64,000 bases of DNA from Paragordius varius (Eukaryota > Animalia > Nematomorpha), in the NCBI GenBank assembly GCA_964247055.1, contig OZ176051.1, forward strand, positions 3,348,001 to 3,412,000, given 5' to 3'. Below the pieces are notes generated by a model that searched no databases, had not been told where the DNA came from, and saw nothing but the letters and a program-made list of their open reading frames with translations. The translations under genes and the position numbers were made by a program. Numbering within the stretch: the stretch's first letter is position 1; every line of letters begins with the position of its first letter. This document shows, piece after piece, positions 51,193 through 59,801 of this stretch.

Positions 51193-51923
51193 ATGATTTT
51201 ACTACTGATACTGTCCTTTTTCAAGTTTACAAGTAATATTTTTTATATATACAAGATTCTGATATATGTGGAAATTATGTTTTTAAGGAAAAACGCGCAC
51301 TTGCTACAAATGCTTCCATAACATACATATATGCAAGATATGTGGAGCCGTATACCTGTCCCAATATCTCAATTTACCCCTTAAACCATACAAGTTGTTG
51401 CCCAAATATAACGCTTGAACAATGCTGTCAATATAATTATGCATTTTTTAATGAAATTCCGAAAAACAAATTTTTTGTTAAAATGAGCAAGTAAATTTAC
51501 AATAAACTTTAAGTACATCTTTTTTTCTCTTTATATCTCTTTGCTCCATCATTATGATTGGGTTATTTACTTTGATCGTTTGTTGCATGTGGTCTCAATG
51601 CCCAATGTACAAAAGGTTTCGTATTCGAAAACAATACAACGGACATGTCATATCATATTACATGGATTCAGGTAATTTTTTGTTTTTGAATATATCGTTC
51701 TTATATATTTGTCATCATAACTCTTTTGTTCTCACAAAAATTTATCAAGCTATTGTTAATTTTTTTAGCATTTTTACTATCATACAATATTTTTTTACCT
51801 TTTTTATTGTTTACCTTTGTGAATTGCCATGCACATATAAATACATTGATAATATTAGATAAACCAGATGCAAAGATTCAATTTAAAACATTGGTGGATC
51901 AGAATGGCCATGTATATGCCTAA
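51193..51923 (+). CDS. Shisa/WBP1/VOPP1-like single-pass membrane protein (165 aa)
   Basis: Exons 51193-51232, 51256-51490, 51514-51671, 51859-51923 (introns 23, 23, 187 nt). Signal MILLLILSFFKFT; ectodomain C.NY...YTCP......SCC......CC; TM FFLFISLCSIIMIGLFTLIV; juxtamembrane CCMWSQCPMYKR. This architecture is typical of the Shisa-like family. Confidence 0.72.
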
Positions 51924-52138
51924 TTTTATATTGCAAAATTATTTCTCCCTTCCCTGCAAAAATTATGCATTTTTATTAAATTCTTATTTATTGCATGCAA
52001 AAAATGTGATGATTTTATATGTATATATATATATATATTATTTAAGCTGTAATATAAATTAAATAAATGACCTAATTGGTTAACTCTTATTTACATGTCC
52101 ATATATTGTTGCAATCTGCTAGCAGACGATTTGATAAA

Positions 52139-52641
52139 ATGTTTTCTTCCAATACGACAGTCATGGAGAATAGTCAAGAAAGCAAAAAATTTAAATTTGA
52201 TGTAAGAAACAACAAAATTACGTTTAGGATTCTATTAACAATGTTGATTTGATTAAATCTACCTCACCGTTCCATGATGACTCCAAGCATTTTAATAAAA
52301 CATTTAGTCCAAACGGACCACAAATTTTCGGAAATTTTGAAACAAGTATATTTTTATATACGTATCAGTTCAAGAAGAAAAAAATGATGAATCGATACTT
52401 GAGAAATTAAAAAGTAGTGAAAAAGAATTTTTAAAAATGATTAAGAAGAAATCAAATATTATGAAGTTGTCATGATTATAATTCTTTTAGTGAAATCGAA
52501 ATGTCAGAAAATCAAAGTTTAAAACAAATTGATGAAATTTTGAAAAATGCGATGAAATTGGAAGAAAGTTTGCGGAAAAAAAGAGATAAATTTCGGGAAA
52601 AGGCCAAAGTTTTGGGAAAACATTTTAAACACTCAAATTAA
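52139..52641 (+). CDS. TEX12: TEX12-like synaptonemal complex central-element protein (142 aa)
   Basis: Exons 52139-52201, 52228-52345, 52369-52465, 52491-52641 (introns 26, 23, 25 nt). The C-terminal about 72 aa DESILEKLKSSEKEFLKMIKKKSNIMNEIEMSENQSLKQIDEILKNAMKLEESLRKKRDKFREKAKVLGKHF aligns without gaps to my recollection of human TEX12 (DEALEKDL..SKEINLML..LLSER....[36 protein letters not shown]), about 18 identities by hand count. Confidence 0.68.
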
Positions 52642-52982
52642 TTTATTATCCAAATAATATTTCTAATAAAATTACAATTACATTCAAAAAGATTAATGGT
52701 ACTAAAACATAAAATAAATTGGTACTTGTTAGGACCATTTGAGTGGATTTTATTAATTCAATTATTTGATTTTTTGATCCGACTGATTCTCCAAAGCTTT
52801 GCGCGTTCATTCCTATATTATATATCTAAAAAAACTTTTAAGTATAACTCTTTTTTCATCAATGACACATATGGCATTAACAAATAATAAAGTAGATTCA
52901 AGGATGCATTTCAACGACAGCATGTAGTGTGGCAGCTGACAAAAAACGTTAAAGGGTTAAAATGTGTTAAATTATATTATGG

Positions 52983-55900
52983 ATGATTTATCTTGTCATA
53001 TGCCTCTTTCTTGTAGTATTGTCCGAATCCTTTGGTTTAATTCATTTTCGTGAGGATTTCAATAATATTGAGGATAGTTACTTGAGGTATTTAATATCTA
53101 AATATAGATGGAAATCCGATTTAACTAGTTATAATTTCGTAAAGCTTTCTACCAATCAGACTTTTCATGTTGAGGTTTAGTGGTTGATCATTTTTAGAAT
53201 AAAAACGTTTATTTGATAGCGGCTTTATTTAATCCGATAGTTTTTCAACATCAATCCGCAATATATATCCAGTATAATTTTGATTTATGTAGGTTTGAGA
53301 CATTAGTTAATGATTATGAATTTAAATCTGTTATCGTTAAGTTAGATAACCGATTTAACGATTTTGGGCTTGAAATTAAGCTTGACTTTCAGGAATGTAT
53401 AAAAGTTTGATATTTAATATAGTGTAGCTTATTCTTTCTATCGGTTTTTCGATCAATAATCAATCTCAAATAATTTTGTCCAAGAATATCAAAATATGTG
53501 ATTATCAACTAAATAACTGGCACTTAATAACCATAAAACTTTTTAGAAATAAATTATATTCGATTGGAATCAATGAAAATATTATTATACACAACAATGT
53601 GATATCCGATTTTAAGTCATTTCAGTTTATTATATTTTAGACCCATTAGTCCAAATTTGAATAAAAAATGTGTGAACAAGTTTTTATAACTTTTTTTAAC
53701 TTCTTTTAGAATAAAAGTTATTGTCAATTTTTGTAGTTATATAAATCCATACCGCTTTATTAGTCTTGGTAAATGCGACGAAATAGATGAATGTCTTAAT
53801 CAACTGCACAGTTATAATGTAATATTGGCTTTAATTTTAGGATATATTTCAAACTTTCTATCGCGCATTTAACATTTTCAAATTTATTCAAGACTCGGTA
53901 ATATTTAATCCTTAAATTGAATTTTATTATATTGTTTAAAAATGAACTTTATTTCACCAAATTTATTAATGGTATTTTAGAAATTTGGATTTTGTGTTTA
54001 GTTTCATTTAAGCCAAATTAGATATCGCACAGTATAAAGCACAACTTTAGTTATTTACTAATAAAATAGTACGGAGGTTTATAACACTCAAATTAACTGC
54101 CCATTTAAATAAATATATTATACTAAATTTATGTTAACCCCATCATTTTTTGTGTATCTGGATGATTTAAATTCCCAAACTCTTATTTTTGAAAGTTTAA
54201 TACGGGTGAAAGCGTTTTAGAGAGCTATACTTCTCACCCTTTTAGGATTTTCGTTGAATCGGTTGGTCCATATTTGAAGCGTTTTATCCTTATATTAACT
54301 AAAAAATAAATTGATAAAATAATTTAGTCAACTAAAATATTAAAATTTCAACCATAAATATATCACCACCAAACTTGGACCGTTAAATTAAACTACTATC
54401 AAATTTTAATTTTTATATACTATAATATTATGGATTTTAATTATTTTATATTCTGGAGATAATTTTAAATGTATAATTGCTGGGAATGATTGAGTCAATG
54501 TTCAATAATTTTACTAAAAAGTTTTACTTTATCTCTATCATAATTCTTATCCAGGGAGTATTAATAAACACTTTTTTAAATTTATTTAGAATTCCATAAG
54601 CTTACAAATAAATGCATTGCATACTCAGATGTTTGTGGATAATATCATTGTGACTTCAGACAAACGCGCTCTTGAAAAATGGACAACCCAAACTTATTAT
54701 CCGAAGCTTAGAAAAAATGCCTCTGAAGTTGTAAGTAGAATATTTGTATTATTAAAAGTTCTTTATTACCCAGTTTGTTTGCTACAATGTTCATACGATT
54801 AGACAGGTAATGTTTGATATAAATTATTTGAACCGCATTTAACTCAAGCAAAAATAATCTGATCAAAACCAAAATTTGGTATTTTTTGTTATACATCACC
54901 AAGTTAATGACCTACTGATTGCCAGGCACTAGGTTGCTGAGATTAATGAAAATAGACATAAAAATCACATAATCTGTGCTTACATACTCTTTTTGTTTAT
55001 TTAAATTCGTTGTTAAATTTATTTAGACAATCTTATTTTTGAATAAAATCATAAAAACAGAACAAAAAATAAAAATTTTCAAATTTCAAGGAATCTATTC
55101 TATTTTTGCGTAGCAAAATTAGAATAAAATTGTAGGCTCTAAAGAAAAAAATCAAGTTTAAGTAATATATTTTTTATTATTTTGATAAATAATACTTTTT
55201 TACTTTCACGTCTTTCGTATCTTAATTTATACTGTTCCAATTATTTAGATTCGTTGGTACGAAAAACTAGCGAAACAAGCACAGAATAAACCCTTTCTTT
55301 GGATTTTATATGTTTGTATCATAAGCTTGCCCTTAACTTATATCCTCATAACGATATCAACTCCCAATTCATATAAAGGTACCTCTAAAATCTAATCCAT
55401 TAAAAACTCTTTTTATATCTTTAAAACTTTATTTTCAACATGTCAAAAAGTATTGTTAAAAAGGAAATTACGATTCGATTTGCGGCAAAAAACAATTTAT
55501 TTCAATTAGATTGAAATATTTGCAATTTTATTTAATAATGACATTAGGAAAGTTATTTCACCAGGCCTTGTATTGGCTTACCATTTGATCTTTATTCAAG
55601 CGATACAAGCTTAATAATTTTTCGTTATAAAATATTTTGCATCGTCTATTATCCGTTTTTTGATTTCCGACATTAGATTTTTTAATATATATATGTCCAA
55701 ATTTTGAATCTAATATCAGTTTTGTAAGTATGCAATAACCTCGGATAATATAAAGGGATTTAGAGATTTATATATGTGTTGGTTTGGGATTTTACCTATA
55801 CTTATTATTTGTGCAGAAATATAATAAATTGTTTTTATTTTAAAAAAATGTGGAAGGATTAAATATATCTACTTTCTCTTTTCTTAATTAATTATTCCAA

Positions 55901-56926
55901 TGTTATGACTTAAATTATAGTTATAGAAGGCTAAAATTATTTCTATTATTAAATTTTTAATGCAAATTATTTATTATGCTTTCGACCCTATGTTACTTGA
56001 CTTCTCTAGGTCTAATTTGAATTAAATATTGTAAATAAGAAATTGCAAAATAATGTTTAATTATTAAACTTTTATTATCTTGATGATTATATACCATTTA
56101 CACTTTGAGAGTATCCTTGAACATTTCCAGTTGGTGATTAAAAACCTGAATTTGGTCTTTTAAATTTATCTTTTGTAACTTTTATCTATCAAACCGTGTA
56201 TCATTCATCCTTTTCCTCACTTTTAACCTATTCTCATTATTTAATACAAACTTTTAAATAAATATCATTTATCAATCCGAAACCGTATTTTTTATTAGTT
56301 TCGTAAAATATATTTTAATATTAATAAGATTATAAAAGTTAATTGAAAAATATAAAAGTTTTCTGGGTTATTAATTACAATTTGTTAATACATTTATAAG
56401 TTAATAATAATGTTAAATTGAAAAAAAATATTTAGCAAAAAAAGTGGGTTGTGAATGAAGAATATTAGTAAATGACAAATATATAACAAACCAAGAAAAT
56501 TGGGTTAAAAAAGGATGAAATAAATTTATACATGCAAAATTTATGGTTAATTTCAAACTTGAAAAGTCTAAGGACCAGCTTGAAGTAGTAAAGGACCAAC
56601 TTGAAGTGTTCAGGGCCAACTTGAAATGTTCAAGGACAAACATAGAGTGTTCAAGGATCAATTTAAAATGTTTAAGGACCTTGTGTTCCACTCTTGAAGT
56701 TCAAACGGTATATATTTTTTCATTTTATTTTATTAGACGCAAAAATTTAGACTTATTTGTCGCATGAATAGTTAAAATAAAAAATCAATTTAATACACTT
56801 ATTCTAATATTCCCTGCTTAATTATTTTGATTTATTGTTTTTATTTTATATTTAGAGACTACTGATGAAAGCATTTTATTTGATGATGAAGTCAATGAGG
56901 AAATGGAAGATAATACTATCGATTGA
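52983..56926 (+). CDS. Highly divergent calnexin/calmegin-like ER membrane protein lacking the P-domain (about 377 aa)
   Basis: Exons 52983-53174, 53198-53404, 53428-53615, 53641-53679, 53710-53818, 53841-53897, 54590-54730, 55249-55378, 56856-56926 (1134 nt, phases consistent). Signal peptide; FREDF..RW; YLIAALFNP..IYIQY; NWHLITIKL..NKLYSIGIN..SDFKPISP; MFVDNIIVTSD..EKW; calnexin-type TM NKPFLWILYVCIISLP; acidic cytosolic tail. Confidence 0.78.
56094..56708. mobile_element. TA-flanked TIR element (615 bp) with 21-bp tandem repeats in the last intron of the calnexin-like gene
   Basis: TA|CCATTTACACTTTGAGAG ... CTCTTGAAGTTCAAACGG|TA; about 6 units of aacttgaagtgttcaaggacc at 56556-56680. Confidence 0.72.
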
Positions 56927-59801
56927 TACTTTATATCACCTATTACATTTTTAGATGAAATTTAAATTAATAAATGGATTATGTTAAAGATTTTTTTGAG
57001 TAATATATTTTTGATGTATTTTCTTTACATGTTTCCTACAATTTTATATTTTGCATCCAAATGGTTTAATAACGCTGACTAATCGAGTGATATATATTAT
57101 CAAAAATAATAAATATGAACAAAAATTGTTAAATCCTTTTTAAAAAATTGCACACATTGTTTATTAATTAGATTATACGACAATTATAATATAGGCAGCT
57201 TCCACAAAAAATATCCTCATAAAATATGTATAATCTGATAGGAAAAGGTATCCGGATTATCATTGTGCTTTTGGTTTTGGCCCTTCCAGGTAATTAAAAG
57301 AGTTATTTATACTTTGTTAACTGCTCCATATCAGAAAATGGCAAAATTTGAGTATTTTGTTATAACTTTTTTGGTGAAAGCTTAAGGCTTCATTTTAAAA
57401 AATATCACTACTACATTTAACAAGCAAAACAATATTTTTTAAATGGATGTCGACTCTAAAAGTCTCAAATTTTGAATACATTCAGAATGGGCAAGTTTTC
57501 CTAAGATAAAGGCGAAAGGGCTCAGATTGGGCGATAAAAATTATAAATATATGCTGAATTTTGACATCATATAATTTTTGGAAAAAATGAATTTTTCAAA
57601 AATTTAATTTATAGCAATTTTGAGTGAAGCGAGTTTGATGGTATTATAAAGCATGATAACGGTATAAAATATTTTTCGATGTTATAAAAACACGTTTTAC
57701 ATATAATTCGATTATGTTGAACATTTCTATCATCTCCTAATTTCAATTTAAATTTCGTTTGCTTTTGAATTTGGTGATTTACTCAAAAACATTTTATATT
57801 TAACATAAATGTAAAGACGTATGGATATTTTAATCAGAATTCTGAGATGATAGAAAGGCTCTGCATCATCAAATATATAAAAAAAGTGTTTTTATAATAC
57901 ATAAAATTTATACCGTTTCTGCTTTAAAATTTGGCTATAAATTAAATTTTTTTAGCAAAACACCCATTTCAAAAATATCTTTATTGCCATTATCTAACAT
58001 AAATTGAATATCGTGAAATCTCGGCATTTGCATAATTAAAAACCATCCCATTTTTTAGGGGAGGGGGGGGTAAAATTTTTGGACTTTAAAAGCCTACATC
58101 TAAAAATCAAAGTATTATAAAAATATCGTTTTAATATTGATTTATAGTTTATTATTTATATATCAAATTTTTGGAATAAAGCAGGTTTTTACCAAGGAAA
58201 CTTATTTAACATATGTGCTAATTTTGCTATTTTCGATATCGAGTTATTACCACAAAAGTGTTAATAACTTTCTTACATCATTCGTAAGCCATAAAACTAA
58301 TGCTATGAGAATCTTGATACATTAATCTATCACAGTGGATAGATCAAATATCATCAGGATATTTATTTATATTCCCCACTTTTCGACGCAGTGTATATCA
58401 TTCGAAAACTGTTAAAATCTTTATAATATTCATAAATATAACTGATATTCGAGATATGCAGTAAGAATTTAGAGAAACGAAGGTTTTCTGAATATATTTA
58501 TAAAATTAGCTAAAACATTGTACATTAACAAATAAATGTTCATTAATCAAAAGGTTTTTTGTTTAAAACGATTATTTACTTAATATCGATGGTAATCAAT
58601 TTTTTATATCTCTTATCAAAACTCCGAGAAAAATTATAGTTTTAGAATTGATTAATATAACCGATGTTATAATGAATTTGAGGTTATAACTGTGTATTTT
58701 AGCATTTTCTAGGGAATATATTTTAGGTAAAATATTATATACAATAAAAAATAAAATGATTAACGACTTTTTAATTATATATAAATAATAATATAATTTT
58801 AAAAATATCCAGCTTAGGAAAATCATTGAATCGTTAATAGGTTGCAAAAATTGACCCTATAAAATCAAATATATTTTAAATTAAATTAATCTAGATTATT
58901 ATTACCATTCAAGAATTTCAGTTTTTTGCGCTCTTTTGTATGATGTTAAATACTTTACTATATATTAATGCTTTTCATTTTTAAAAATTTTAGTTCAATG
59001 AATCAGGTCAAAAAATTTTGTTAAACTTTAATTAAAAATTTTTTGATATCTGGACCATTTTTTAATATGATCTATCATTTGCCTACTCAGATAAAATGAC
59101 TTTGGAATTTTTTGAAATAGCCTTCGAAAAAAGTCAACCGGTGAACTGGTAAGATAAATATAAAATTATGAATGGGTATAGGTGAGAAATGCATATTTTA
59201 TATGTGCATTTCACAAGTTGTGTGAAATTACTGCGTTAAATAGTGATTTCGATTAAAAGTTTAACGAAAGATATGAGCAAAAAATCCAATATTTAATATT
59301 AACAGTAATTAACATATTATCAATGTTACCGCATTTATACATGCTAAAACTAAAACAATTGTTTGGAAGTAAATTTGTTTTGAAAAGCTAAAATTTGGTT
59401 TATCTCCTAAAATAATTTCTTTCAAAAGAATTAGGAATGCAAATTTTATGCAAATCTTGTTTTTTACATAAATTATTTTGAATATTTTTCACAAAACTCT
59501 TAATAAAGGTGAAAATTACACAATAATTAAATATGCATGAGTTGTTTTCTTCATCTATCTTGATTTTTTAGCCCTCGATGAAAATATATGGATATTTTCA
59601 ATTTTACTAATTAAAAATTTCCAAAATACTCGCAAACAATAGATTGATAATAGTTTAGGCAACTAATTTGGGTTTGATGAAACTGGTCATGAATACAATG
59701 AAATGACCACCGATTTCAATATTAATCATCTAAAAGATTATAAAATATATATTTTTAAAATAGTATATATATATATAAATTTACAATATTATACCTTTAT
59801 A

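Follow-up and report, generated by a model that had tools for sequence, protein, structure and literature searches.

The 64-kb window analysed here (64,000 nt of the Paragordius varius genome, contig OZ176051.1) contains a nine-exon gene on the plus strand, at positions 52983-56926, with a predicted product of approximately 377 amino acids (aa). The initial annotation had taken it for a calnexin-like gene that has lost the P-domain and the lectin motifs. The genome is represented by a 110.6-Mb assembly of 44 contigs with a G+C content of approximately 27%. With the ATG at 52983 as start codon, and with GT-AG introns permitted if they were 20-40 nt long, the reading frame could be followed as one open chain, on which the gene model is built. 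Five micro-introns of 22-30 nt come first and are followed by three long introns of 692, 518, and 1477 nt. The parts of the gene are as follows.

52983-53174, plus strand: exon 1, signal-peptide ATG, then the start of the luminal domain
53175-53197, plus strand: micro-intron 1, 23 nt, GT-AG
53198-53404, plus strand: exon 2, 69 aa, the expected place of CGGxYxK and of the start of MFGPDxCG, neither of which is present
53405-53427, plus strand: micro-intron 2, 23 nt, GT-AG
53428-53615, plus strand: exon 3, 62 aa, lectin-domain strands
53616-53640, plus strand: micro-intron 3, 25 nt, GT-AG; alternative placement 53625-53649
53641-53679, 53710-53818, and 53841-53897, plus strand: exons 4-6, separated by micro-introns of 30 and 22 nt
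53898-54589, plus strand: long intron 6, 692 nt, donor at 53898
54590-54730, plus strand: exon 7, 47 aa, final lectin-domain strands
55249-55378, plus strand: exon 8, 43 aa, juxtamembrane segment and transmembrane helix
56856-56926, plus strand: tentative exon 9, acidic 23-aa cytosolic tail ETTDESILFDDEVNEEMEDNTID, then stop

In size class the micro-introns match those of the genome's calreticulin gene, where introns of 24-28 nt split conserved coding sequence. The exons extend well beyond those first proposed, since the initial annotation did not use all the micro-introns. The intron-aware open reading frame (ORF) chainer also made a false micro-intron in the calreticulin gene; ORF length, phase, and homology, and not the chainer alone, were therefore taken as the basis of the model of the window gene. 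For the 25-nt intron after exon 3, the placements 53616-53640 and 53625-53649 are equally good and of the same phase, and the products differ by 3 aa; the overlapping introns may represent an alternative donor/acceptor pair, or simply an ambiguity. The tentative exon 9 was placed by a phase-correct AG acceptor at 56854-55, by its acidity, and by an AATAAA approximately 45 nt past its stop codon. If this exon is left out, the frame runs on through 14 nt of intron sequence after exon 8 and closes at the stop codon 55393-55395 (…SYKGTSKI). As judged by hydropathy, the product carries one N-terminal signal peptide (the first 16 aa of exon 1, hydropathy 2.56) and, close to the C-terminus, a single hydrophobic helix. 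An out-of-frame ATG lies 4 nt 5' of the signal-peptide ATG and opens a 24-codon ORF (52979-53052) that overlaps the start of the gene.

The relationship to calnexin was seen in exons 7 and 8. All similarity searches were run exon by exon. In a search of 177,635 PDB sequences, the top matches of exon 7 were calnexins, namely 1jhn_A at residues 378-412 (E=0.46) and 8rjc_9 at residues 422-456 (E=0.72), and the sole match of exon 8 (KPFLWILYVCIISLPLTYILI) was human calnexin 8rjc_9 at residues 475-501 (E=0.051). In the latter alignment, KPFLWILY..SLP of exon 8 stands opposite RPWLWVVY..ALP of human calnexin, and the transmembrane helix has a hydropathy of 2.37. Exon 8 thus contains the (R/K)P(W/F)LW motif and the C-terminal transmembrane anchor of the calnexin subfamily. 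The two matches occur in the correct order, with a gap of 18 aa between them compared to 19 aa in human calnexin. Since two independent exons find the same protein in the right order and at nearly the same spacing, the calnexin match, judged by these alignments, cannot be chance. The same search returned only chance-level matches for exons 1, 2, 3, and 5 (DsbA, ribosomal L22, and an EGF module), and nothing usable was obtained from the ESM Atlas look-alikes of exon 2. A search for homologous proteins with exon 2, in a length window that would hide full-length relatives, gave no candidate and did not recover exon 2 either.

The luminal domain was examined with a hidden Markov model (HMM) of 21 full-length calreticulins, collected with the calreticulin exon of this genome, which was scanned against 2,818 stop-to-stop pieces of at least 15 aa from the six frames of the window. 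The best three of the 2,818 pieces were exon 1 (profile positions 4-44), exon 7 (314-354), and exon 3 (154-201), and they are colinear with the profile. Exon 7 reached p=0.0005 against composition-preserving shuffles and P=6e-4 in hhalign, for which the template was a 24-sequence alignment of calreticulins and calnexins. Exon 3 reached a shuffle p of 0.0035 with the calreticulin HMM and of 0.001 with a 204-sequence N-domain profile, and its strands WHLITIKLFRNKLYSIGINE align to THLYTLILkPDNTYEVkIDn (hhalign template 173-193). In exon 1, HFREDF directly follows the signal peptide, as yFeEeF does in calreticulins (hhalign P=0.047, template 21-31), and the hhalign P was approximately 0.05 for each of exons 1, 2, and 3. 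An HMM built from fungal calnexins only saw exon 7 alone, being too distant otherwise.

The order and spacing of the exons were also those of the family. None of 2,000 shuffles attained the summed colinear score of four exons, and colinearity itself was seen in only 3-6% of the shuffles. When the exons were compared in pairs with those of the genome's own calreticulin, the two highest shuffle z values belonged to colinear pairs, exon 7 with calreticulin exon 5 (5.6) and exon 3 with calreticulin exon 4 (3.0). The pair of exon 2 and calreticulin exon 3 reached a z of only 1.8, under the off-diagonal value of 2.0 for exon 3 with calreticulin exon 5. Exon 2 can be aligned in two competing registers, on which hmmsearch and hhalign disagree; spacing favours the register that sets 'VYLIAALF...IYIQY' opposite 'FYAISAKF...LVVQY'. 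The exon-2 and exon-3 anchors are separated by 72 residues compared to 75 profile positions, and those of exons 1 and 2 by 38 compared to 44. Lectin-domain homology is thus found on both sides of the P-domain insertion point, in exon 3 before it and in exon 7 after it. These sequence comparisons demonstrate calnexin descent for exons 3, 7, and 8 and make it most likely for the remaining luminal domain, exons 1 and 2 being suggestive by their position only. The signal peptide, the lectin-domain strands of exons 3 and 7, and the calnexin-type transmembrane segment of exon 8 bear out the initial annotation of a calnexin-derived gene. The acidic tail, which it had listed together with the strands and the membrane segment, stands on a tentative exon.

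The P-arm is missing from this gene. P-domain motifs are the most readily detected part of the calreticulin family. The P-domain positions of the calreticulin HMM had no match anywhere in the six frames of the 64-kb window, and none of KPxDW, PxDWD, DW[DE], and GxWxxPxIxNP occurs in the six frames of 52900-57000, introns included. It had been considered that further P-domain exons might be hidden in long intron 6 (53898-54589); the six-frame HMM and motif scans ruled this out, and no P-domain-like ORF was found in any frame of that intron. Exons 4-6 link the lectin-domain halves by approximately 70 aa, of which approximately 50 aa with four cysteines stand at the position of the P-arm, as had been proposed. 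The last 19 aa of the segment are probably a strand returning to the lectin domain. The exon-3 and exon-7 anchors are approximately 70 residues apart; the corresponding distance is approximately 113 profile positions in calreticulins, and in calnexins it is longer. The four-cysteine segment was found to be without relatives in the Pfam, PDB, and family-HMM searches.

The glycan-binding residues were also altered. The lectin site of calreticulin comprises the Cys105-Cys137 disulfide, Tyr109, Lys111, Met131, and Asp317, of which Asp317 contacts mannose and is needed for glycan binding (PMC7687155). Neither candidate register of exon 2 preserves this residue set, and no CGGxY or FGPD was found in the six frames of 52900-57000, in agreement with the earlier statement that CGGxYxK and MFGPDxCG are unrecognisable. 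In the 24-sequence family alignment, the columns of Cys105, Tyr109, Lys111, Met131, Cys137, and Asp135, which we take to be a further lectin-site residue of calreticulin, are invariant, and the Asp317 column is not. Within the significant alignment of exon 7 (MFVDNIIVTSDKRALEKW), Asp317 of calreticulin is replaced by Gln and Trp319 by Asn, and the Asp of FDN, which belongs to the Ca2+ site (Asp328 of calreticulin), is kept. Since the P-arm is absent and the lectin motifs are not recognisable, binding of Glc1Man9 and recruitment of ERp57 or CypB through a P-domain are unlikely for the predicted product. As for the membrane helix, the YxxT motif, which serves intramembrane client binding, is reported to be strictly conserved in calnexins (PMC9753464). 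In exon 8, Y-V-C-I stands opposite Y-V-L-T, so that the Tyr is kept and the Thr is replaced by Ile. The tentative exon 9 is acidic and ends in ...EDNTID, with no endoplasmic reticulum (ER) retention motif of the RKPRRE type.

To place the gene in its genome, the other members of the family and the glucosylation pathway were searched for. One canonical calreticulin is encoded, at C3:10827390-10828409 on the minus strand (region C3:10826604-10829909), with CGGGYLKF, IMFGPDICG, three P-repeats, a C-terminal HDEL, and micro-introns of approximately 24-28 nt. Its closest named relatives are Trichuris and Trichinella proteins. It could well serve as a positive control in work on the splicing of micro-introns here. 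Over the exon that holds the lectin site, it is 50-59% identical to distant relatives, and such conservation over the same region indicates that the strong divergence is specific to the window gene. No canonical calnexin was found in the 110.6-Mb assembly with PF00262, with the lectin-site exon of the genome's calreticulin, or with fungal calnexin as queries, each of which readily recovered the calreticulin, and the exons of the window gene are single-copy in the genome. Since no canonical calnexin appeared in these searches, it is probable that the window gene represents the orthologue of calnexin rather than an additional paralogue. Genes for UGGT and for two members of the ALG6/ALG8 family are present (C2:5946874-5947143, C3:11790377-11792792, and C3:7885227-7887696), and the glucosylated N-glycan pathway seems to be intact. 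With UGGT, ALG6/ALG8, and a canonical calreticulin all encoded, a monoglucosyl cycle seems to be in place, with calreticulin apparently serving it.

The reading frame has been kept open. At the stop frequency of 0.086 per codon that goes with this base composition, the chance that 377 codons remain open is 2e-15. Since the frame is open though the sequence has diverged beyond recognition by Pfam, it must have been long kept by selection, and this argues against a pseudogene, which the initial annotation had named as an alternative. GT-AG sites and phase are preserved at each of the eight introns. A single indel polymorphism was seen in the exons, an in-frame deletion of 3 nt at 53757, within the segment that replaces the P-arm, and it is found in every covering contig of two of the four sequencing runs (X1 and X3). 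The intronic indels are of 1, 1, and 8 nt; in intron 6, polymorphism is denser than in the exons and the indels are not multiples of three. As a separate observation, over 51500-57400 the public DNA runs X4 and X5, compared with X1, show haplotype or strain differences from the assembly of approximately 1-3% in exonic stretches and of 6-7% in intron 6. One of these DNA runs is labelled as a second organism, yet it is near-identical.

We consider it fairly probable (roughly two chances in three) that the gene encodes a retained, membrane-tethered ER protein that derives from calnexin and works independently of glycans and of a P-domain, the ER location, the loss of lectin and co-chaperone binding, and the present function being inferred. 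According to this proposal, the only calnexin-lineage gene of the genome would encode a type I ER membrane protein of approximately 377 aa, which would have kept the signal peptide, a much-diverged jelly-roll scaffold with the Asp of the Ca2+ site, and a juxtamembrane and transmembrane segment of the calnexin type; a short acidic tail would probably have been kept as well. It would have lost the whole P-arm, with approximately 50 aa and four cysteines in its place, together with the residues that define the glucose/mannose site. Reading of Glc1Man9 and delivery of ERp57, CypB, or ERp29 to clients at the tip of a P-domain would then no longer be possible, and the glycan-dependent folding cycle would be left to the canonical soluble calreticulin. 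Selection would retain the protein for a glycan-independent, membrane-tethered job, the likeliest being to hold or retain clients, whether membrane or secretory proteins, through their polypeptide, or to act at the ER membrane as a scaffold or in connection with Ca2+. The wider proposition, an animal lineage without calnexin as a lectin chaperone, in which the sole orthologue is selected as a membrane protein lacking both the glycan site and the P-arm, is put forward tentatively, and we hold it to be rather doubtful.

Several results weigh against the proposed ER membrane protein. No exon matched PF00262 even at E<=10, nor did the six-frame genome search with this profile match at the locus. 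Exon 2 showed no significant similarity to any family profile in the HMM and shuffle comparisons, and exon 1 without its signal peptide is marginal (shuffle p=0.02-0.13). YxxT is kept by half (YVCI), which weakens a retained intramembrane client binding. The ratio of nonsynonymous to synonymous polymorphism (pN/pS), approximately 0.33 among the 12 exonic variants listed (5 synonymous and 7 nonsynonymous), speaks for the proposal but is not significant (binomial p=0.06). The search of sequencing runs found no RNA run with the locus, and the four DNA runs gave contigs without splice joints; the tentative exon 9 had no homology or RNA support. Finally, the whole-genome search was a six-frame search with a first-look filter and cannot prove the absence of a canonical calnexin.

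The rival explanations have to be weighed against the same evidence. The gene can be viewed as a decaying calnexin relic under relaxed or no constraint and near loss, in a lineage that is said to have shed many conserved genes. Such a relic would explain the extreme divergence compared with the calreticulin of the same genome, the loss of every functional motif tested, the lack of an RNA run containing the locus, and an exonic polymorphism that is fairly high. Nevertheless, neutral decay to this degree of divergence would have closed the frame, for which the chance of staying open is given above, and it does not agree with the eight of eight introns intact in splice sites and phase, with an exonic indel that is in frame, or with the pN/pS of the listed variants. 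We regard decay as unlikely, although slightly less so than the two explanations that follow.

It may also be argued that only exons 7 and 8, and perhaps exon 3, came from calnexin, and that the N-terminal luminal part is encoded by sequence of other or novel origin and has no calreticulin-type lectin fold. The lack of significant profile similarity in exon 2 and in the mature part of exon 1 fits such a chimera, and so does the disagreement between hhalign and hmmsearch over the register of exon 2. However, exon 3, which is significant, is situated before the P-arm position, the four exons are colinear in their best local alignments, as few shuffles are, the anchor spacing fits the family profile, and HFREDF occupies the family position right behind the signal peptide; a chimeric origin is therefore improbable. 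We give as little credit to the version of the initial annotation, in which the gene would be an extra, tissue-specific (for example germline) paralogue for particular clients, similar to calmegin or calsperin; a canonical calnexin would then also exist and have been missed by the searches or by the assembly. Vertebrate CALR3 (calsperin) provides a precedent, as a family member without lectin activity that is still a chaperone for particular clients. However, three different genome searches found the calreticulin easily and no second canonical member, and both calmegin and CALR3 retain the P-domain. The link to testis calmegin and calsperin in the initial annotation rested solely on a neighbouring TEX12-like gene, with no evidence of an expression pattern, and gene adjacency is uninformative about the tissue of expression.

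Compared with known members of the family, the calnexin-derived ER protein that we favour shows a mixture of retained and missing features. It resembles calnexin (CANX; canine 1JHN and human 8RJC) in its type I topology with a signal peptide, in the tentative acidic cytosolic tail, in the last lectin strands (xFxDNxIVxxDxRxxxxW), in (K/R)P(F/W)LW..Y....(S/A)LP, and in the spacing between these blocks. The P-domain of calnexin contains four copies of each of two repeat motifs. The window gene has no P-domain and neither CGGAY.K nor MFGPDKCG; it has Gln and Asn in place of the lectin-site acidic residue and the Trp of 'GLELW' and reads YxxI for YxxT, RKPRRE is missing, and the product, with approximately 377 aa compared to approximately 590, falls below the Pfam threshold. 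With the calreticulin of its own genome it shares homologous lectin strands and the same micro-intron style of gene, whereas that calreticulin is soluble and fully canonical. CALR3 and calmegin differ from it in that they keep the P-domain, match Pfam, and are extra paralogues beside a canonical calnexin and calreticulin. CRT3 has been named as a member of the calreticulin family (PMC7687155).

In domain make-up, the predicted product also resembles engineered calnexin or calreticulin constructs, lectin-deficient or P-domain-deleted, with which glycan-independent client binding has been demonstrated. Unlike these mutants, the window gene is natural, both features are missing together, and the client motif of the transmembrane helix is only half conserved. 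The glycan-independent activities of calnexin, that is, polypeptide binding, intramembrane client recognition, and links to Ca2+ and the translocon, have mostly been studied with engineered mutants. Client recognition based on the transmembrane segment of calnexin has been described (PMC9753464), and a limited text search of the literature returned no description of a natural calnexin without a P-domain. If the wider proposition is true, the gene would be a natural experiment that isolates a conserved glycan- and ERp57-independent core of calnexin, in an organism in which calreticulin alone runs the UGGT cycle. It would show what evolution keeps of calnexin once the lectin cycle has been delegated to calreticulin, and that quality control of glycoproteins in the metazoan ER is possible without a membrane-bound lectin chaperone. 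The locus also carries a warning for annotation, in that the gene is invisible to Pfam and its introns of 22-30 nt hide it from ORF-based gene calling.

Apart from the coding parts, long intron 8 contains a repeat, given in the following line.

56031-56818, no strand: high-copy repeat in long intron 8, approximately 100 times the depth of its flanks in all four DNA runs

Within this repeat, a 21-nt tandem array was detected at 56556-56680 by Tandem Repeats Finder (TRF). The array gives an open frame that looks like a coiled coil but consists simply of the 21-nt repeat. A second high-copy repeat, at 57213-57400, likewise has approximately 100-fold the depth of its flanks in the four DNA runs.

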